From assembly GCA_021613535.1 (NCBI GenBank), contig CP075494.1, forward strand, positions 6,820,001 through 6,884,000: a DNA stretch of 64,000 nt. Reading direction: 5' to 3'. Source of the stretch: Adineta vaga. Taxonomy: Eukaryota > Animalia > Rotifera. Under the pieces are notes generated by a model that was not told where the DNA came from, made no database searches, and saw only the letters and a program-made list of their open reading frames with translations. Positions 5,153 through 47,819 of this stretch are shown one piece after another (the first letter of the stretch is position 1; each line of letters starts with the position of its first letter). The position numbers were made by a program, and so were the translations under genes.

Positions 5153-7630
5153 AGATCAGTGAGAATGGTAGAGATAATATTGTCCCATTGCGCTAGGTCA
5201 AAGAATAGTGTAACTTACGTAAAAGATTCGCGTTTCCACTTAATGCCATGTTGTATCAAATCACGTTCCTAGAAAATAACAAAAAGAAGAAATGATATAC
5301 AAAAATCTTCTTCTGATTTTGATATTATCAGGAGAATAGATGTAAACACTTTCTTCTTATCATACATAAAGGTAGACAACAATTCATTTACATAATAAAT
5401 TAGTGGTATTCAAATGATCCTAAATTATCTAAAATAAAAAAGATCAATAATTCCTCCTGGGTTTTTAAAATTTCATAAATAAATGCGATAAATATCAAAG
5501 AAATGATAAACGAATGATACTCATTCATCGAATATATAATCGATTGAATAAAACAGAATCTTAGGAGATTGATCTTAACGGTTACATTTATATAAAACTA
5601 TCAATCTTATCTTATAAAATCATTATAACATTGTTTATGTCATATTCATCTTCTCACATGATGTTATCAACATCTAATCGTCTAAATCAAACTGCTAATC
5701 GTATCTTATTAGACACTATTTATTTATTATTTCTCTCCCAGCGAACATAAATAAACGGTAACTAAATGTTTATTTTCTCTTTCATGCTCAACTTACATCG
5801 ATTTTCCAAATGAAAATGATTTGCTTCCGTATTCTTTTTTTTTCTCACAAAATCATAAACTTTTAATTTCCCTGAGCGAAACAGAAACAAAACAAGTAAA
5901 TACAATATCAATTCTCCTAAGTCATATCATTATTAGTTTTTTTCTTCTTCTATACATCGTTATCGTGATATCAGATAATCGAATACTTACGAATATGGTT
6001 AGATAAAATTCGATTAAGAATATTAATACATTGATTAGATTTCTTACATGGAAAAATATTTCGCATCTCGTTAGAGATTTGTTAACGCTATTTCAATGAT
6101 AATTAGCTGTTTACAACAGAAGTCGTTCGTACGGTTTTCTTTCTGAAAAGAAAAACAATGAGAGATGCAGAGGGAAATATTTCTACAGTAGATCTTCTAA
6201 TGTAACAAGCGGAGTTTTCATTAAGACTTCGACAACAAATATTCCTATGACAGTAAGATGACGGTAGATAATGACAGTAGGAAAACAAATCTTATTTCGA
6301 GATTCTTAATGCTATGCTCTTAATAGTATATCTGGTATTGTTTTTTGTTCTATATTTATTTACATAGAAGAATAAATAGACGTCGATGGATATTATGACA
6401 TTCCTGACACGTTAGAGATATCTCATCTAATGAAATTTCTTTTTCATCTCAAATAAATCTTCTTTGATCTTCAAAATCAAAACTGTGATTTTCTTTTTTC
6501 GAAAAAGGATTTACTTCATATCGATCAAGGTTATATGAAAGGAGTCTCTTGTTAATATACATCGTTTAAAGTGGAAAATATTGTGTTGTTTTCATTTTAT
6601 TATTTCTCGAAGGAAATTGCACTATTTACTATCTTCTACAGATTTATGAATAAATCGACGAAATTAATCTATGTTTTGCCAGACAAAACATTCTTTCTTA
6701 GTTGGGAATATGACCTTTAGAGATATGAAAACAATACATATTTGGTTTCATGAACAGGTCAATGTAGATTGCTGTACTTTACAATCATTAAATTTCATTA
6801 TGTATAGTAAATGCTCACCTGCTATTTCGAATTAATTAAGAAAGAAATAAAATCATAGATACTGTATACATCGATATTGATCGAATGGTTTCAAAAATAC
6901 TTGTACACTGAATTAGCCTTGGATCTGACATTGCACATAATTAAATAGATATTTACTCAAACGAATCATTTTTCAATTTCTCATTTGTCAGATGTGTCAC
7001 GTTTATGAACATGAAAAGAAATTATCTTCCTATTTACAGATCGTGCTATCGTCAAAACTGTATTAACCAAGTTTAGTTTGATCATCGAAATCATATCATA
7101 TAATACGATTGAATATCTCTGACTAAATGCTTGTACTATCGCTATACATTCTGTAAAGACGAGAGGTCGCTGATTGACAGTGCTGTATTTTTCTTTGTTT
7201 ATTCCTATGGTACATCTAAGCAACTAACCGTTTGTTCGTTCTATCGTCTTTATAAAAATGACTCATGAAATGTTTCTCTCGAGTTTAGCGAAAGCTGATC
7301 ATTGATCAAACAATGATAAATACAGAAAATATACTTTTATAAATCGAACGAATTCCAACATGAATTGTATTTCTACAATCAAACTAAATGTTTTTCACCA
7401 GATTACTCGGCGCAATTGAAAAAAATAAGAACAAATCACAAATTACGCATGACTGAATTATGCAGAACAAGTTAAACTTTTAATCGAATGTTCACGTTTA
7501 TGAATGCGATACCGTTTGAAATTAAATAGAACGTTTTATATTACGTAAACATACTATTGACGAATACTAATATCGAAGATTGTTATTATGCATTTCGTTG
7601 GTTTTTTTTAATTTTCTCTTGAAGATATCA

Positions 7631-8958
7631 ATGAAAAGAATATCACATTTTAGTAAAGTTCGATCGAATAGAATCAAATATTTGAAATTATTTCCACTGT
7701 TTATTTATGATATCGATCGAGTAAGTGAAACTATTGAGATTTCTTTTCAAATGAATTTTTGTAAGTTTAGGTTGAAGAAGATGAAGAGCATTGGCCATGT
7801 TATCAAGCTAAAATTGTAGATGACCTTGTTATGATTCCAGATGTTGAACAAGGAGATAAACTTTGTCGATATGTAAGTATAAAACTACTTTGAACATTGC
7901 TGACATTCGTTTCTATAGGGAAGTTTTGGTAAATGTGAATTTGTTCGTACAACAACTCAAGTATCTCCATCGTTACCATTAGAAACAATTCCAAATAGTA
8001 AAAAAGAATACGAAAAACCCTATCGATTACGATCCATTGGATATACAGATACAAGGTTTGTTGTTAATTATTTTTAATAATTTATTGAATTAAACTTTCT
8101 AGTGAACCAATATCTTCTTTTGAAAAAGAATTTCTTGATGAATTAAATCAGAAAATGTTTTTATCATCCGTTGATCAAATTCGTGAACAGAATCATCAAG
8201 AATGTCAAACACGTCTTGAACAAATTCAAATTTATCCATCCACTTCCACGACTGACCCCAAACGACTATTTGATAATCAAATGGATATTTCCTCATCAAA
8301 ATTAATTGTCTACGAACATGTTTATCTTTTACCCGAAGAAGTTTGATTGATGTCATTATTTAATCAGGAAAAATTCCATTTGTTTTTTTCTATAGACAAT
8401 TTTTCTACAACATGCTCTTGGTTGCTTAAACGTCAAAGACGAAACTAATCAGGTACGATAACTATGGAATTGTATTTTCTTACGGTCATATCTCTAGATT
8501 TTATCTCCAGATGATCTATGGCATCGATTTATTTTAAAAGATTCATTATTTCCAATCAAATATGCTGTTTATTATTATTTCCGTAGTAATGGATGGATTG
8601 TGAAATGTGGATTAAAATTTGGTTGTGATTATAGTGAGAATTACTTTGATTTTGAATAAATTAAGATGATCGTCTCTATTCTATAGTGCTTTATAAATTT
8701 GGTCCAAGTTTTAATCATGCTAATTATTGTGTTTCAATTGAAAATTTTTGGAAGATCAATAGTTCAACTTGGTCATTTCTATCGGGTCTAAATCGAGCAT
8801 GTTTAAATGCTGCTAAAACTTTACTTTTAGTTCATGTTGATCAATCAAATATGATTTCGACTTCTATCGAAGAATTTCTTGAACAAACAAAGATAAAAAC
8901 GATAGAAATTCAACGATGGATACCAACACAAAATCAATCTGCCGAAGAAATGAAATAA
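7631..8958 (+). CDS. TSEN2: tRNA-splicing endonuclease catalytic subunit Sen2
   Basis: YGSFGK N-terminal motif; EHVYLLPEE; YYYFRSNGWIVKCGLKFGCDY; catalytic Y/H in LYKFGPSFNHANY and K in AAKTLLL; multi-exon. Confidence 0.88.
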
Positions 8959-8991
8959 TTCTCTTTGTTTCTTTCAGATAGATTCTTTATA

Positions 8992-10438
8992 ATGACGTGG
9001 CTCATGTGGATTTTTCTTGCTAGTTTTGTAATGTGTACGTGAAGCTGCTCTCATCGTATGCAACGATATCTTACTTCCTCAAAATTAACATGTTTTTCTT
9101 TTCTTTAAAAATTTCTAGTCATTCTCTATCTGGTAAATATATACTACGTGTCTGGTACACGATGTCCATCATCAGATCGAATGGATGGGAAAACTGTAGT
9201 AATTACAGGAAGTAATACAGGTGTTGGAAAATACACGGCGATTGAATTAGCCAAACGAGGTAGGGGAGATGTTCGTGTGAGGTTTGATTAATGGAATTTG
9301 TTTTTTGTTATTTAGGTGCACATGTCATTCTGGCATGTCGAGATCGGAAACGAACAGAAGAAGCATTGAAAGAGATATGTAAATTATCAGGAAGTGATCG
9401 AGTAGAAATGGAAATGCTTGATCTTTCTTCATTGAAATCAGTTCGTGAATGTGCTAAACGATTATATAAAAAATTAACAAAATTAGATGTTTTAATTAAC
9501 AATGCTGGTGAGTAAAGAATTAAGAATGAGTTAACTTTCCAAAACAACAACGTATTTTACCTTTTTGATTACATGAAGTATATCATATTCTATATCTTTA
9601 GGCGTGATGATGGCATCAGGAAAGTCTGCCGATGGTTATGAAATTCATTTTGCTGTCAATCATCTGGGTCATTTTCTTCTAACCAATCTTCTTTTGGATC
9701 TAATGAAAAAAGCACCATCAGCTCGTATAATTACTGTTTCATCAGTCAACCATGCTTGTAAATCGTTTATTCATTTTCACTAATAATCTATTTAATTTTT
9801 TTTTCGATAAGTTAGTTTGGAACTTGAAAATTAACTGGGATGATATCAATTTTACAAAACCATACTGGAAAATGAATGCTTATTCTCATAGTAAATTAGC
9901 GAATGTTCTATTCACTAATGAATTAGCACGAAGATTAAAAGGTTTATTTTAGCATTCGAAATCATCCATTAATATTCTCATTGAAATTTTTCTTAGATAC
10001 AAATATTACAGCAAATAGTCTTCATCCAGGTAAATGAATATCTTATTGAATTAATATATTCAGTCAATAATTTTCTAGGGGTTGTTCGAACGGAAGTCAC
10101 GCGAAATATTCTCGGTCGGTATCAAATTGTATTAGATAGTATAATTTTACTGATTACACCAGTATGGTGGTGTTTAACTAAAAGTCCTGAACAAGGAGCT
10201 CAAACATCGATCTATCTTGCCACTGATCGTCAATTAGAACATGTTACAGGAAAATATTTTTCGTGAGTTATGTCTTTTTTTCTCTTCTTTTTCTTACTGA
10301 GATTTTATCTCTAGAGAATGTCAAGAACGTTCTTCATCGAAAACATCACTTGACCAACAAATTGCTGAACGTTTATGGAAATTAAGTGAAGATATGACGA
10401 ATTTAAATGACGCATTGAAAGATATTTCTAATAATTAA
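8992..10438 (+). CDS. Retinol dehydrogenase 11/12/13-like short-chain dehydrogenase/reductase
   Basis: N-terminal hydrophobic anchor; [13 protein letters not shown]; LDVLINNAG; NHLGHFLLT; YSHSK catalytic motif; SLHPGVVRT. Confidence 0.92.
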
Positions 10439-10527
10439 TTAACACGAATTTTCAATTATAAACTGATTTTTTTTTGATAAAAATAATGAATATTTAAAGT
10501 AATAGTTTCAGATAGATTGATTGATAA

Positions 10528-11515
10528 ATGATGACAAATATGAATGAATATTGTTCGAATTGTCAACAATCATCATCATATCCAATGGTTCGTTCAACAT
10601 GGGCAAGAGCTGCTTTAAATAAAATTGAAAATGATCGATGTTTACAAGCAATTGATCGAACAAAATGGTATCGTTTATCTCGACATGATCTTCTAGATGA
10701 TGAATATCAAGAACGATTTTATGAATTAAATGAAGATGAAGATACAAAACAATTTATCAAACAAAGTGAAGAAAAATCTGAGAATGTTTTCCTACAAATT
10801 ATTCATAGTTTCATGACATCTTTATTAACTTTATTTATTACACGAACATCAGGTATGAGGATTGATTGATTTGTTTTTTTTTCCATTGATTTCAATGAAT
10901 CTATTTGTAGCAAATGGTTTAATCGGTCGTGGACGTATGTTTGTCTATTCGACAACTCAATTTAAAACTTTACTTGATATTGAATCGGATTCTAAATCAC
11001 CATATACCACTCTACTTGATATCGGTGCTGGTGATGGTTCAATTACTGAACGGATGGCGAGTATTTTTCAAAAAGTTTATGTTACTGAATTATCTCCAGC
11101 GATGCAATGGCGTTTATCAACATCTGGTTATACAGTACTCGATACAGATCAATGGGGAGATAATCATTTTGATGTTATTACCTGTTTAAATGTTCTTGAT
11201 CGTTGTGAAAATCCTTTACAATTACTAAAACAAATTCATGATCATCTAAATCCTAAAACTGGTCGTTTAATTCTTAGCCTTGTCCTTCCATTTAAACCCT
11301 ATTTTGAATATAGTAACAATCATCGTCCAACTGAATCTTTACAAATCGAAGGTGATCTACCTGAAGAACAAATAAATAGTTTTCTATCGAATGTTATTCA
11401 ACCATTAGGTTTTCATTTGGAAAAATTTACACGTTTACCATATCTATGTGAAGGTGATATTGAGCGAAGTTATTACTTTCTCTTCGATTATGTCTTTGTC
11501 TTTGCAATATCTTAA
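10528..11515 (+). CDS. METTL9: Protein-L-histidine N-pros-methyltransferase (METTL9/DREV), 2 exons
   Basis: TRTS|ANGLIGRGRMFVYS; LLDIGAGDG; FDVITCLNVLDRC; TRLPYLCEGD. Confidence 0.93.
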
Positions 11516-11557
11516 TTGAATATTTCTCTCTTTCAGATATACGCATAGATATATATT

Positions 11558-14289
11558 ATGACTGCAAGTACATTTCAAGATAAATTAAAAGATTTGAATT
11601 TAACTGGTGATGAAGTAAAACGCTTTTCGGATGCATTTCAAAACGAAGAATTTCGTAAGTTATTTATTCAATATGCCGAAGAATTAAACGATCCAGTCAA
11701 TCGTGAATTATATGAAAAAGAAATTCGTGCTGCTGAACAACAACGTGGATCTGATGTTACCTTTGTTCATCCAAATCCAGGTCATGTATTGAAAACAACA
11801 CTCAATGGAAAAACTAAATGTTTTATTAACATTGCAACGAATGAACATGTAGAGAAACCATCTTTTGAAAAAGCCAATGGATCAAATGGCAATAGAGGTG
11901 CACAATGGAGTTTACCACATTGTTTAGCAGGTCCACATGAAGATGTAGATCATGACTCGAAATTATGTACTGTTTATGATGTGATCTACTCGCCGGATAC
12001 CTATAGAATGGGTGAAACGAATGGAAAATTTATGAATATGATTGAGGAATCGGCAATAGATTCAGTTGAAAAGAATTATAATTGTAAATTAGATCGAGCA
12101 AATGTGAAAAGATTGAAAATGAAATTCAAAGGTGTGGCCAAAGCAACAATCATTCGGAAAAAAAACGAGAATTTTCAAGAAGAAACAGAAATGAATACTG
12201 AAAAAGACCTGAAACATGAAACGTAAGTTTGCTAATGCAGTTATTATTTTAATTTATCGATTCTATTTCTTTTCTTCTCTAGCGATGAAATCATTGACAA
12301 AGCTCTATCTAATGCTCAAAATCATAAAGTTGTTCTCTCAAGCCATAATCGTTCATCAAATGCTCCTCCATCAACGAGCGTAACTTCACTCCAAACAAAT
12401 TCACCTAGTACCGATGAAAATGGATTTACAATTCCGACATATCGTATAATTCATCGTGGCGAATTTGATATACAGGATTGTACAAATCCTCTTGTTCCAC
12501 AGATTCATTCAATGCGTCCAAAAGAATTACTTGTAGAAATTGATCTTCCCCTGTGTGCATCAACTAGTAATGTTGATTTAGATGTATGTGAACGTTCATT
12601 GAAACTTCACTGTGATTCGCCGAAATATTCACTTGATTTACCATTATCTTATCCAGTTCGCGAAAGTGATAGTCACGCACGTTTTGATAAAAAACAACGG
12701 AAATTACTTGTTACATTAGCTGTTATTAAAGAAACTCCGTCGATGATGGAAATTCAAACAGACATTCCATCTGAAGAAATAAATGAAGAATCCAATGAAA
12801 TCTATTCAAGTATTCCAACATCAGAATCAATGTCGAGTATTGTAAAGCCTGAAAATATAACTTATTCATCGATTCCATTTGAATATAAGCAAGGTTCAGC
12901 ACATTTAGCACTTGTTCTACATGTTAAAAATGTTGATAAATCAAGTTTAAAATTAGACAATGATGGACAACATATAACTATTCAGTTAACTTCATTAGGT
13001 TCAGGATTTTATCCACTTTCTCACCAACTTTGTGTTGATTTCGATGAACCGAAGACGTTCGAAACCACAGAAAATTCTTCCAGCATAACATTCAATGAAG
13101 ATAATGTTTTAATTCTATTGAAGAAAACTTCAAATAATAAAGAAATAGCTCGATTTTCAACTGGCAGTAACCGTGATAATATGGAGGTAAAAATAAAATA
13201 TTCTTCATAAATCATGAACACAAATATTTGATCATGTCTAACATTTCCACCTGTACATTATGTTTTTTTTTACTTCTCATGTTTAGATCAATTATTCAGG
13301 TGCGTCAAGTAGTACGGCCGATAAGACAAACTCACTATCCAATCAAGTCATGACAAAAGAAGATTTTCTCATAACAAAATCAGATTCATCAGCATCATCG
13401 AATGGTGATCATCCGAAAAAATTAACAAAAAAACAAGCAAAAAAAATGGCCAAAGAAAAGCGGAAGAATTCCACATCAACAACAGATAGTAATGAGAAAT
13501 TATCAAATAAAATTTCGAACATCTCCCTTCAATCGAATACTGACGAAGAGAAAGAAGAAGATAAACTTCCTGATATGCCAAAAAACATTCCACGTCCAAC
13601 AATCTATCGTCGACATATGTCCGAATCGCAAGTTGAATTAGGACCTACGTCAAACGGAGAATTTAAATTAAAAGTAGGAAACTTTGATCGAAATGTTTTC
13701 ATTTGAAAATCTTTCAACAAATTTTCAGGGTATATTAAAAAATTCAACTAAATATCGTTCATATTCAGCATCATTCAGTGAACCATTTGATAACCTTAAC
13801 CATGATGATCATCGTGACGAATCTGTTTTTGAAGCATGTTCAGCTGCTGATGATCTAACTAGTAGCAATGAAAATAATAGTATTGTAACATCACCAGATA
13901 GTGGTGGTAGTAGTAGTTTATGTACAACACCAAATTCATCATTGAATGTTAAACATGTAACTTTTAATAATCAAGTATCGAGAAAAACATTTAAACCAGG
14001 TGGACCTGTTTCGGGTATGAGAAAATTATCATCGAATCAACAACGTAAATTGAAAAAACGTAAACGACAAGATTCTCTGAATTCTCAATCAAGTGATCAA
14101 GACGATTCAACCTCGGACAAAAATAAAGTCGGCCAATCGAATGATTATAAAAATCCTGTTCAATTTCAAGATATGATCGCTCGAGAAGCCAGCGGTATTC
14201 AATCGACTAATCAAGACGGAAATGAAGCATCAACAACTAAATCAGCTGTTCGATTTACTAACCCTCTTATTTTCGAATTAGACAATTAG
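11558..14289 (+). CDS. DNAAF2: Dynein axonemal assembly factor 2 (kintoun), PIH1 and CS domains
   Basis: FRKLFIQYAEEL...FVHPNPGHVLKT..KCFINI..WSLPHCL; RPKELLVEIDLPL; ARFDKKQRKLLVTL; C-terminal NPLIFELD. Confidence 0.92.
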
Positions 14290-14449
14290 TGTGTCAATCT
14301 TTCTTTCTCTTTTTTTTCTCTTCGTGATGTGCATGGTTGTTTAGTGTCTTTGTAAATAATATCATATCTGCCTATACACTGACATTTATTTGGTGGTGTT
14401 TAAAAGAAAAATAACATATTAGATTTTTATGTTGTTTCTTTTCTTTCAG

Positions 14450-16686
14450 ATGTCCGAATTCGATACCATTGACTTAGATACTGTGGTTGGTAAATCACAA
14501 TATGCACTTTATGAATATCATTTTGCCCAAGCTGATCCTCACGATCATGGTATAGTTAGTTCAATAGAAGCAAATAATTATTATCAACGTGCACATTTAA
14601 AACCTGATCAATTGAAAATGATTTGGAACTTAGCTGATCCACATGGTCGTGGTTATTTAGATCGACGTGGATTTTATATTGGATTGAAATTAATTGCCAT
14701 TGCACAGAATAACTTAGATTTTCATGATTATTCCAACTTAACAAAAGATATTGTCCCACCAAATTTAGCTGGTGATATTCCACAAACTATAAGCCTTGCA
14801 GTTGCTGATATTTGGACAATTGGACCAACAGCTCGTTGTACATTTGATGTAGCCTTTGAAAAATTAAGTGGAACAATGAGCAAATTACCTGGTACATCAG
14901 TTAAACCAATATTTCTTAAATCCGGTCTATCTGCTGATCAATTACATAAGATTTGGGAATTGAGTGATATTGATGAAGATGGCGCATTAGATCGAAATGA
15001 ATTTGCTATTGCAATGTTTCTTATACATGGTTTAAAAACGACAACGATTCGAGAATTACCAGATCGTTTACCAACAAATTTAATGCCAATACGTATGCGT
15101 CGTGTATCCGGAGCTGAAATTGGACTTCATATACCAAATATAATGCCAACAGGAACTCAATTACCAACACTATTACCAGCACAAATCTCACCATCGAAAC
15201 GAACGGATGATCAATGGATTGTCAGTTTGGAAGAGAAACAAAAATTTGATATTTTATTCAATCAATTAGATTTAGATAAAGATGGATTTCTTACAGGTGG
15301 TGATGTTTTTCAAACATTTCTTGCAAGTGGCCTACCAAATTTTGTTCTATCACATATTTGGAACATATGTGACATTGGTCAAACTGGTAAACTTAATGCT
15401 GAACAATTTGCATTAGCATCATACTTTATTCGATTGAAATTACAAGGTTTGCTCTTTCATTTCTCCATGATAATATCCTTGAATCTTTTTTTACTAGCAC
15501 CAACTTATCAAATTCCAATGGAACTTTCGCATGATATGATACCGCCATCACTTCGACCAAAAACATTTTCTGTTAGTGAAAGTGATAATGCAGAATTACA
15601 ACGTTTACTAAGTGAAGTCAATGCATTAACAAGCGAAAAAAGTCTATGCGAAATTCAATTCAATGAAAAACAACAAGCAGTTAAAGAAAAACGTGCTGAA
15701 TTATCATCATTGGAACTTCGATGTGGTACTGTTAATGCAACATTAGTTGAACGTCAACAACGCATGACGGAAAAACAAAATGAATTAGGTGATATACAAA
15801 CTCGAAAGGAAAAGACGATTAAAGATATTTACGATGTTGAACAACAAATTAAAGAAGAAAATCGTTTAATTGAACTTGCACGAGAGAAAATCAATGAATT
15901 GTCTGTTGAAACTGATGCACAACAAGAAATACGTCAAACATTAAATAAGATAAAAGATGAAAAAAATACAATTGAAAGTCGACTTTTAAATAAACAACAA
16001 CAATTGAATCAAACTAAATTAGATCTTGAACGATATCAACGTATTGTGGAAGGTCAACGTGCACTTATTGATCAATATATGAATAGTGAACAAAAAGATT
16101 CACTCACAGCTATTAATGAATTGACAGAAAAATTTAAACAGGTAGAAGAAAATATTTTCTTCATCTTTTTTTGTATCAATAATCATCTGTTTTTATATTT
16201 CTTAATTAGTTGGCTGATAGTCCCGTTAAAACAGTTGCTCCTCTACCTATGGCTAATCAATTTGTTACTCCTAAACAACCAACACAAGTGACATCACCAA
16301 CAACTACTTCCGCAGATCCGTTTGGCTTACCAGCCAATACAAATAGTACATTCAATGCATTTCCACCTGTAAATGATCCATTTGGAACTAATCGAGCTAA
16401 TGATCCGTTCTTTTCTGCTACGCCAGCAAGTGGCAATCAAAAATTAGATGAATCTGATCCGTTTCGATCAGGTGATTTCGATGCAGCACATGAATTAATG
16501 AAAAAATCAATGGCTAGTCGTTCGAAAACTCCCGGTGCAAATATGTTTGGTGCAAGTGATTTTAGTCATACTGCTCCGCCACCTGTCAATCGACCACAAT
16601 CAGCAATGCCGTGGGAACCAACTCGTCAAGCTCCCCCTCAACCTGGTACACAAGCATTTAACGATCTTTTTGATGTTTTTGGTTAA
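14450..16686 (+). CDS. EPS15: EPS15/EPS15L1-like endocytic adaptor (3 EH domains, coiled coil, DPF repeats)
   Basis: Three EH domains (IWNLAD, IWELSDIDEDGALD, IWNICD); long coiled coil; four DPF motifs; introns at ~15447-15498 and ~16142-16209. Confidence 0.88.
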
Positions 16687-17489
16687 TAGAGAAGCACTTC
16701 ATTCATTCATTCACCTATATATATATATATGTATTGTCTCTAGTCTTATATTTTATTTTAAATGTTGTCGTAATATTAATGGAAATAGAATCTGTAGTCT
16801 TTGTCGATTTGAAATAGAGAAAATGATATTATTCGTGTAATCAACAAATAAAAGGGCATCAATTCTCCATCCAAGGCCAACTGTGTCTTTGAAATTTCTT
16901 TCTCTTTCTTCTTTCTAAAATAGGTAGGTTGTTTTCGTTCGTTCTCTTCCTCAATAGAACTATGAAAGAAAAGAAGGAGAGAGAGAGACGGAAAAAATTG
17001 CGAGGAAGATTGATTGGCAATCGTAAACGAAAATGAAACAAGGGATGTTCTAATGGCACAAGTTAGACTTTCGTTTTCTTTTTGATACTACTTTCATGTA
17101 GGTGTTGTTATTTTGTCGATGCCAGGTAATGTTCGATAGGTAGAGAAAGAAATGCGAATTGTTAAACATCATCATACACATACCTTTTAAACTTATTATG
17201 GTTATATACAAGTGATTAATGTCGAAAAAATGACGAAGAAGAAGGATAAGATCGTAAATAAGTATATTTATATGTCTGTCAATAGTGTCAATGACTGATA
17301 AGTGAGAAAAAAACGAATGGTATTTACTTTTTCGATATATCGAGAAAGAAAAATGAAATTCTATTCTTTGATCTCTAGACCATTGATAGAAGTATGATTT
17401 CAAGGCGTAGACTAATATTTTCATAACTGATAAGAAAAGAACCTTGTAGAAGCAAAGAAAAATATTCGATTATTTTTGTAGATTAATAA

Positions 17490-18026
17490 ATGACTATTCC
17501 TGACGAAGAAATACTTATTTCTCCATCTCCAGTTCGAGAAAAGCCACCCATTTCACGACTTAATGCGCCTCAATCTATACGTATTGAGTGTCAAGCTGAA
17601 GAACGACATTTTATCAATTCAATTCCATTAAAAATCAATGCTTCTGCAAAACCAATTCGTTTTACAATGAATGATTCAACAAAATCAGGTCCATATCGCT
17701 CAGAAATTATTATTCATAGTAATCCTGATACGGATTTTTATATAAAAAAATTCCGTGTAGCTTATCATACACGCGATGATTTATCCTTAGCACATCCAAA
17801 AACACCTCGAGCATCATCATCACGTAGTCATTCTGTTCATGTTCCATCGCATGAAAAGCAACGTGCTCAACAATCAGGAAAAGGTCGATCCGTTTCATTT
17901 CCACGATCGAATTCTCAAGCAATCTTACATCAATGGATCGATGATATCTGTTCGGATGAAAAATTATTAACAAATGATAATATTTCTTTTTTTCTTAGAA
18001 ATGGTGAATTTCTTGCTAGAATTTAA
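17490..18026 (+). CDS. Uncharacterised 178-aa Ser/Pro/Arg-rich protein
   Basis: Intact ORF with codon usage like neighbouring genes; acceptor ttttgtag just upstream; AATAAA at ~18061; no recognisable domain. Confidence 0.65.
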   Translation: MTIPDEEILISPSPVREKPPISRLNAPQSIRIECQAEERHFINSIPLKINASAKPIRFTMNDSTKSGPYRSEIIIHSNPDTDFYIKKFRVAYHTRDDLSLAHPKTPRASSSRSHSVHVPSHEKQRAQQSGKGRSVSFPRSNSQAILHQWIDDICSDEKLLTNDNISFFLRNGEFLARI

Positions 18027-46778: not shown

Positions 46779-47819
46779 AATGTCTGATCGCAATTGAAAT
46801 TTATATACATATATTCAATCATCTTCTTTTTATACGTCTTCCTTATCTTATGAGAATTCTGTTTTTCTTTCTTTTGATATGACTTCCACTTTTTTGTGAA
46901 AAAAAATGTAGACTTCCAATTTCTTCTTCTTCTTACATAATGTGCATTAGTCTTCTTCTTCTTCTTTAATCTTATTGCTTCAATTTATGAATTAAAACTT
47001 TCTACTATTAATATAATCATATATTTGCCATAGCAAAATAAAACATATATTACTATCTTCACTATTCCTTGTTATACATCATCGAAACATCGCTTCAATG
47101 ATAATCGCTAGTGTAGCAATTTCGTTGTAATAGTTAAATCAAGAAGAAGTCTCTCTGTACCATATTCCTTGGTTGTTAATTAAATCTGTTAGATTGATTA
47201 GATTGATATGTCATTTCAATGTTGGTCGACGATGGCTAAATTTCATTTTGAATGATATGATCGTGAGTGTACATTTATGTGTCATATCTAATGAATAAGG
47301 ATGATTAATATGAATATTTTCAGATGTTATGTTCGAATTGAATTTAATAATGAATAGATTAAATGTAAACATATATCTTTGTTGTTGTTGACTTGATTGC
47401 TGTGAAGGTGTGAATGTTGATGTGACAAGAATACGATATTGTACTTGAAATATTCGTGTGTACAGTTCGATACGTTATATCGTTAACTAGAACGAATTAT
47501 CGAAGGAATAGTTAGTTGACAAAGTGTACAGAGAAAAACGAAAATAATAGAATTCATTAGAAGCTGATGGTATTCAAAGTGATGTCAACAGGAAAGTGTT
47601 GTTCCTCAAAACGCGAGATCAATGTGCGTAAGTAAAATATGACGCACGATGATTTCTTTGGCTACACAAAGTTGCATGTCATCAATATAAATCTGGATTT
47701 TTATAAAGAGGCATATCAACATACAATTTCAATGCTTATATATATTAGAAATTCTAAATTTAAAAAATATATCATACTTTACTATAAAGTAAGCTGAGAG
47801 CCGAACAGAATATTAATCA

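Follow-up and report, generated by a model that had tools for sequence, protein, structure and literature searches.

Five genes lying head to tail on the + strand of the genome of the bdelloid rotifer Adineta vaga probably form, over at least part of their length, an operon of the type that is resolved by spliced leader (SL) trans-splicing, of the spacer-poor kind that uses a single leader. The genes occupy positions 7631-16686 of the window, the 64-kb stretch of DNA that was analysed (C5:6820001-6884000 of a 100.8-Mb assembly in 6 contigs), in the order TSEN2, RDH, METTL9, PIH1/DNAAF2-like (here DNAAF2) and EPS15, and are functionally unrelated housekeeping genes. The evidence consists of SL genes in the genome, one exact junction between the SL and a message, message ends beside two of the acceptors, continuity of assembled RNA contigs at two gene junctions, and conservation of gene order and acceptors in other bdelloids. 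In the proposed mechanism, RNA polymerase II would start upstream of TSEN2 and read through several or all five genes, each upstream message would be cleaved and polyadenylated a few to about 50 nucleotides (nt) before the next acceptor, and the 23-nt bdelloid SL would be trans-spliced onto an acceptor made of a pyrimidine tract and AG/AT (the slash marks the splice junction), by which every downstream message would acquire its 5' cap. A single promoter, SL use at the three acceptors other than that of DNAAF2, and a coupling of 3'-end formation to trans-splicing are the parts of this scheme that we infer.

Spacing, acceptors and gene models of the cluster

The distances from stop codon to the next ATG are exactly 33 nt (gap 1, 8959-8991), 89 nt (gap 2, 10439-10527), 42 nt (gap 3, 11516-11557) and 160 nt (gap 4, 14290-14449), and those from stop codon to acceptor are 19, 73, 21 and 160 nt, respectively, so that these are same-strand genes with gaps too short for a promoter. 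The octamer TTTCAGAT is found on the + strand at 8972, 10506, 11531 and 14444, so that every one of the four gaps, 324 nt in total, holds a single copy (Poisson P approximately 2e-8), and it is not enriched across the window as a whole (7 found, 10 expected). The AG of the acceptor is located at 8976-8977 in gap 1 and at 10510-10511 in gap 2 (TTTCAG/ATAGATT in both), at 11535-11536 in gap 3 (TTTCAG/ATATAC), and at 14448-14449 in gap 4 (TTTCAG/ATG), where it follows the DNAAF2 3' untranslated region. All four gap acceptors are CAG, compared with a single CAG and 10 TAG among 11 RNA-supported cis acceptors (Fisher P=0.004), and all four are followed by AT, compared with 2 of the 11 cis sites (P=0.011). 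A candidate SL acceptor, the end of a putative outron, also precedes TSEN2 on the + strand (7600-7630) and consists of a pyrimidine tract and AG/AT with the AG at 7623-7624, 6 nt before the ATG. The original prediction, made from the sequence alone, had listed the five genes, the four gap lengths and a TTTCAG/AT with its AG ending at 8977, 10511, 11536 and 14449, all of which proved exact, and the gene identities hold by exon-wise Pfam and PDB matches. It had also stated that most cis introns of the region end in TAG and that the 33- and 42-nt gaps leave no room for a promoter, and both statements agree with the counts and distances given above.

Gene identities were assigned by Pfam profile search run one exon at a time, as were all database searches, and spliced proteins were joined for reading-frame checks only. 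Gene 1 (7631-8958) encodes a Sen2-like subunit of the tRNA-splicing endonuclease in 7 exons, with predicted introns in a hand-built, frame-checked model; its exon 6 matches PF01974 (tRNA_int_endo) and the best PDB matches are to human Sen2. Gene 2 (8992-10438, 8 exons, 332 amino acids) is a short-chain dehydrogenase of the RDH11-14-like type (PF00106, adh_short), all introns of which were observed as GT..AG joints in RNA contigs. Gene 3 (10528-11515, 2 exons, 309 amino acids) is METTL9, a DREV methyltransferase (PF05219, E=3e-67), with an intron at 10853-10910 confirmed by RNA contigs and an exon 2 that has 100% identity to an annotated A. vaga protein. Gene 4 (11558-14289, 4 exons, 838 amino acids) encodes a PIH1-domain protein with a DNAAF2/Kintoun-like architecture (PF08190 PIH1 and PF18201 PIH1_CS); its PDB relatives are PIH1D1 only, and its three introns were confirmed in RNA contigs. 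Gene 5 (14450-16686, 3 exons) encodes an EPS15-like endocytic adaptor with three EH domains and a coiled coil (PF12763, E=8e-49); both of its introns (15447-15497 and 16142-16209) are predicted, and bdelloid orthologs carry the name EPS15-like. All five genes are on the + strand, and the spliced models of RDH, METTL9 and DNAAF2 built from RNA joints translate cleanly. The first EPS15 intron is 51 nt long, in frame and stop-free, and the open reading frame (ORF) 14429-16291 stays open if it is retained; in a spliced EPS15 transcript fragment of a related bdelloid (L023, lacking the 5' end) this intron has been removed. An Rfam scan of the 64-kb window gave no matches.

Spliced leader addition and RNA across the junctions

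It has been known since 2005 that bdelloids carry out SL trans-splicing. The published SL exon is 23 nt long (GGCTTATTACAACTTACCAAGAG; PMC3795323, Table 1), and the exon followed by GT (TGCTTATTACAACTTACCAAGAG/GT) is present in 42 copies in the A. vaga genome, with one mismatch to the published sequence at the first base; a reversed control pattern gave 0 copies, and all 42 hits share one exon sequence. RNA was examined as Logan contigs of four A. vaga runs from four studies (X1, X5, X14 and X15), aligned over window positions 8800-14700; these contigs are assemblies, not raw reads, and since all four runs skip GT..AG introns, the data represent RNA. Contigs of DNAAF2 carry ACTTACCAAG (X14) or CTTACCAAG (X15) ahead of position 11535, and with the shared AG they read ...ACTTACCAAGAG/ATATACG. 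The 3' end of the SL is therefore joined exactly at 11537, the first position of the mRNA body in gap 3, and is represented by its last 12 (X14) and 11 (X15) letters in two studies. Adineta vaga has SL RNA genes and performs SL trans-splicing, and because no SL copy is present on the + strand of the window, the leader at 11537 is supplied in trans. Among RNA contigs of related bdelloids, one (L019) starts with AAGAG/ATAGAT, which combines the last 5 SL letters with the post-acceptor sequence that it shares with RDH of A. vaga (AG/ATAGATT); in the genomes, RDH orthologs have TTCAG or TCTAG as their acceptor at this place, not AAGAG, and this tail weakly suggests SL addition to RDH.

No specialised SL2-like leader was found, as the 11-12 letters that could be read at 11537 are those of the general bdelloid SL 3' end; a leader that differs only further 5' would have gone unnoticed. 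The sequence ACGACACGTAT, which stands before three X5 contig starts, was rejected as a second leader, its joins being located +29, +6 and +3 from the acceptors and not at the AG; it is probably a 454 rapid-library tag. Many of the 42 genomic SL-exon copies are inverted pairs approximately 157 nt apart. Copies are clustered in two arrays on the chromosome that also contains the window (C5:9884354-9925971 and C5:10912929-10934589), and further copies are found on C1, C2, C4 and C6.

The ends of RNA contigs were located close to the acceptors. RDH contigs end at approximately 10452-10462, roughly 50 nt before the acceptor at 10511, DNAAF2 contigs end at 14396, 14397 and 14415, 35-50 nt before the acceptor at 14449, and contigs of X5, a run of 2013, start at 9007, 11543 and 14453, from which it follows that mature messages abut the acceptors. 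An upstream mRNA 3' end shortly before the downstream acceptor is thus observed at two junctions, by contig ends alone, without poly(A) letters. Candidate poly(A) signals, AATAAT hexamers, are present 20-40 nt upstream of the TSEN2-RDH acceptor and of the points where RDH and DNAAF2 contigs end; that of gap 1, at 8954, overlaps the TSEN2 stop codon.

Continuity of RNA from one gene into the next was found at the first two junctions. A contig of X14 spans at least 8821-9035 without a break and includes the last TSEN2 exon, its stop codon, the unspliced acceptor and RDH exon 1, the span being derived from the 107 letters that separate 8928 from the contig end and from a fully covered bin at 8800-8996. 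In other bdelloids, RDH is joined to METTL9 in three RNA contigs that lack introns (L014 from a Logan run, L016 and L019 from two JGI (Joint Genome Institute) samples) and in which the acceptor in the spacer is left unspliced; L019 contains both full coding regions. These three contigs show RNA over every 21-31-mer across the junction, not single molecules of two genes. Polycistronic RNA is accordingly observed as contig-level continuity at two junctions, TSEN2-RDH in A. vaga and RDH-METTL9 in its relatives.

Loose contig ends in X1 and X15 before 8856 and 10473 were considered as alternative upstream exons or structural variants and set aside as artefacts, being traced to one unrelated locus on C1; a loose end in X14 before 14304 was likewise treated as an artefact, traced to another C1 locus with a short shared run only. 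The sequence of the former locus, a gene at C1:6366393-6366500, stands beside window positions 8856-8880 and 10473-10488 in RNA contigs of two studies, and the runs it shares with the window are only 16 and approximately 22 of 25 nt; either the reads are chimeric or the alignments are short and spurious.

Exon 1 of RDH can be spliced from either of two donors, at 9035 and 9056, and both are used in the RNA of several runs. The long form, which uses the donor at 9056, gains 21 nt (9035-9055) with an in-frame TGA and would encode only a 16-amino-acid peptide, or an N-terminally truncated enzyme from the next Met. A. vaga, A. ricciae and Rotaria share the first 17 nt of the extension (GTACGTGAAGCTGCTCT) without a difference, and the L019 transcript, which is of the long form, departs from them by a single letter at position 17 (...GCTGCTCA). 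The dual donor looks like a conserved splicing switch or a nonsense-mediated decay switch.

Conservation in other bdelloids and alternative explanations

Gene order is conserved among related species. A. ricciae and Rotaria sp. Silwood2, each represented by two assemblies, have all five genes in the same order on one strand and 35-175 nt apart, and Didymodactylos carnosus keeps the order RDH, METTL9, PIH1 and EPS15, with TSEN2 not found within 8 kb upstream. Four further contigs (L015, L017, L018 and L020) are unspliced, and therefore genomic, and serve for synteny only; among these environmental bdelloid contigs, L018 keeps RDH, METTL9 and PIH1, and L020 keeps TSEN2, RDH and METTL9. A pyrimidine tract with AG/AT was present at every junction examined in all species, the motif of gap 1 being found in 3 other bdelloids and the AG/ATG of the DNAAF2-EPS15 junction in Didymodactylos as well. 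The AG/AT is kept between species, and the CAG of the acceptor is not (some are TAG). The tract and AG/ATNTCA-ATG before TSEN2 are kept in A. ricciae and Rotaria, so that in three species the acceptor lies 6 nt before the ATG. The gene upstream of TSEN2 in A. ricciae lies on the other strand, an arrangement in keeping with a divergent promoter region ahead of TSEN2. Adineta and Rotaria share three conserved blocks within gap 4 (14323-14340, 14390-14411 and 14425-14438), located where DNAAF2 contigs end and immediately ahead of the acceptor.

METTL9 is the only gene of the cluster with a second copy, an ohnolog on C2 with 71% identity (C2:12991543-12992139, - strand); DNAAF2, EPS15 and TSEN2 are single-copy, so that linkage cannot be tested independently with the whole-genome duplicate. 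The ohnolog has ...TTTCTAG/ATG directly at its start codon, and an unrelated same-strand ORF ends 158 nt upstream of it, so that the two may form a further closely spaced pair.

In the public annotations of A. ricciae and Rotaria sp. Silwood2, TSEN2 and RDH are merged into a protein of 596-670 amino acids with both tRNA_int_endo and adh_short domains (L009:7126-9899, L010:5781-8554, L011:4487-9922 and L012:4487-9920), and the annotated RDH of A. vaga (297 amino acids) lacks exon 1; gene predictors were misled because the gaps are tiny.

A number of observations weigh against an SL-type operon that extends over the whole cluster. SL letters are reported at one of the four A. vaga acceptors, and none were seen at 8978, 10512 or 14450 in contigs of the four runs. 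In X1, X14 and X15, METTL9 contigs appear to start 8 nt ahead of the acceptor, at the equivalent of 10504, and the bin depth of X14 fits genome-colinear coverage from that position; this argues against efficient SL use at 10512, where SL addition may be inefficient. Two scans of metagenomes for SL-METTL9 and SL-EPS15 joints yielded no genuine match, the sole hit being a chance one in a bacterial SHMT gene. No A. vaga contig bridges 10463-10503, 11496-11534 or 14416-14449, at the RDH-METTL9, METTL9-DNAAF2 and DNAAF2-EPS15 junctions, and assembled contigs can merge separate overlapping transcripts. The gaps in Didymodactylos are 268, approximately 1,800 and approximately 7,000 nt, which is not operon-like spacing, and the METTL9 ohnolog on C2 is without the other four genes. 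The proposal that the cluster is a polycistronic unit resolved by SL trans-splicing, with the leader joined at four acceptors, was therefore upheld in part: bdelloid SL trans-splicing is borne out by the 42 SL-exon copies and the SL joined to mRNA at 11537, gene order is kept in other rotifers (five genes in A. ricciae and Rotaria, four in Didymodactylos), and contigs are continuous from TSEN2 to RDH and from RDH to METTL9, whereas the leader was reported at none of the other three acceptors and no contig crosses from METTL9 to DNAAF2 or from DNAAF2 to EPS15.

The same observations could be explained, with a probability that we judge to be low, by tightly packed independent genes, each downstream promoter being located inside the last exon or the introns of the upstream gene. 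A short outron would then be removed by SL trans-splicing, or nothing would be removed, and the contigs at the junctions would be tails of read-through or a merger of transcripts that overlap. The SL is trans-spliced to more than 50% of bdelloid mRNAs, irrespective of how the genes are arranged (PMC1925144, which cites Pouchkina-Stantcheva & Tunnacliffe 2005), so that acceptors before start codons are expected among packed genes and an acceptor before an ATG is in itself no sign of an operon. The AG/AT acceptor is also present on TSEN2, the first gene, and on the EPS15 gene of Didymodactylos, which is 7 kb from its neighbour, so the motif marks bdelloid SL acceptors generally and not operon junctions specifically. 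Two of the four A. vaga junctions are without a bridging contig, and Didymodactylos keeps the gene order despite its kilobase-sized gaps, so that linkage does not need co-transcription. Against independent genes, the 33- and 42-nt gaps, with 19 and 21 nt from stop codon to acceptor, leave no intergenic space for a promoter, three independent intron-free contigs link RDH to METTL9, one of them with both entire coding regions, and an A. vaga contig is continuous from TSEN2 into RDH. Merging during assembly would need the downstream gene to have its start site far within the message of the upstream one.

A partial or hybrid operon is less probable again. Only some neighbours, for example TSEN2, RDH and METTL9, would be co-transcribed, DNAAF2 and/or EPS15 would also have internal promoters, as in the hybrid operons of C. 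elegans, and RDH-METTL9 may be a stable two-gene RNA. Contig continuity at the first two junctions only is in line with such an arrangement, as is the retention of the unspliced acceptor in all three spliced METTL9 contigs from other bdelloids, and the 160-nt spacer before EPS15, with its Adineta-Rotaria conserved blocks, could include regulatory sequence. However, those blocks coincide with the DNAAF2 contig ends (14396-14415) and may be mere 3'-end signals, and DNAAF2, the acceptor of which is 21 nt past the METTL9 stop codon, has proven SL addition, which fits resolution of an operon best.

Known operons, significance and neighbouring features

As an SL-type operon, the cluster appears to resemble the operons of sea squirts and flatworms, or the SL1-type operons of C. 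elegans, more than the classical SL2 type of C. elegans. SL operons of Ciona/Oikopleura and of flatworms likewise contain unrelated same-strand housekeeping genes with very short or no spacers (19-21 nt at two junctions of the cluster), use one leader type for operonic and non-operonic genes, and have the upstream 3' end at or near the downstream acceptor. The bdelloid SL differs from theirs in being of unrelated sequence and from another phylum, the polycistronic RNA of the cluster is seen at contig level only, and two of its spacers are longer (73 and 160 nt to the acceptor).

The SL2-type operons of C. elegans have an intercistronic region of approximately 100 nt with a U-rich element. Features that the cluster would share with C. 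elegans operons are 3'-end formation of the upstream message followed by trans-splicing of the downstream one, and conserved operon gene order. Gap 4 is similar to the SL2 type in that a conserved T-rich block (TTTTATGTT), for which a role as a Ur element is hypothetical, stands between the acceptor and the contig ends 35-50 nt upstream of it, and gaps 1 and 3 are similar to the SL1 type, in which the poly(A) site abuts the acceptor. Unlike the SL2 type, the cluster shows no leader of an SL2 family, the 11-12 leader letters read at 11537 being those of the general bdelloid SL.

The operons of the chaetognath Paraspadella gotoi (PMC12460157) are from a lineage that is gnathiferan, as are rotifers, and in which SL trans-splicing is prevalent; the definition applied to them requires genes of one strand that lie less than 250 bp from each other and have SL evidence, no leader is specific to operons, and housekeeping functions are enriched. 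Those operons are documented genome-wide, whereas the same study (2025) only lists rotifers in passing, without data and citing older papers, among the lineages with trans-splicing and operonic transcription. Operons in rotifers were given as 'ND' in 2008 (PMC2481426) and as not reported as of 2021 (PMC7986045), and a literature search for Adineta operons and bdelloid polycistronic RNA found no report of a rotifer operon in the searchable papers.

The wider proposition, that bdelloids have true SL-resolved operons dating from the bdelloid ancestor, spacer-poor and single-leader with upstream polyadenylation at or next to the AG/AT acceptor, stands in our view at about even. If it is true, operons are present in two gnathiferan phyla (rotifers and chaetognaths), which would reopen the question of single or multiple origin, and certain pairs, RDH-METTL9 for example, may be retained as stable mRNAs of two genes. 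A documented rotifer operon would extend the short list of animal phyla with operons, would be relevant to whether operons arise after trans-splicing has evolved, and would improve annotation, as public models fuse TSEN2 and RDH into a false protein. Since one SL junction is proven here and assembled RNA is continuous over two gene junctions, the locus is a convenient test case.

Acceptors of the same type were noted elsewhere in the window. A sixth + strand gene, a 178-amino-acid ORF at 17465-18026, is located 800 nt past EPS15 and is preceded by TTTTTGTAG/ATTAATAA-ATG, the same AG/AT acceptor type; it has 75% identity to a same-strand neighbour in A. ricciae. Another TTTCAG/ATG is present on the + strand at 47318-47328, and may be an SL acceptor at the start codon of another gene.

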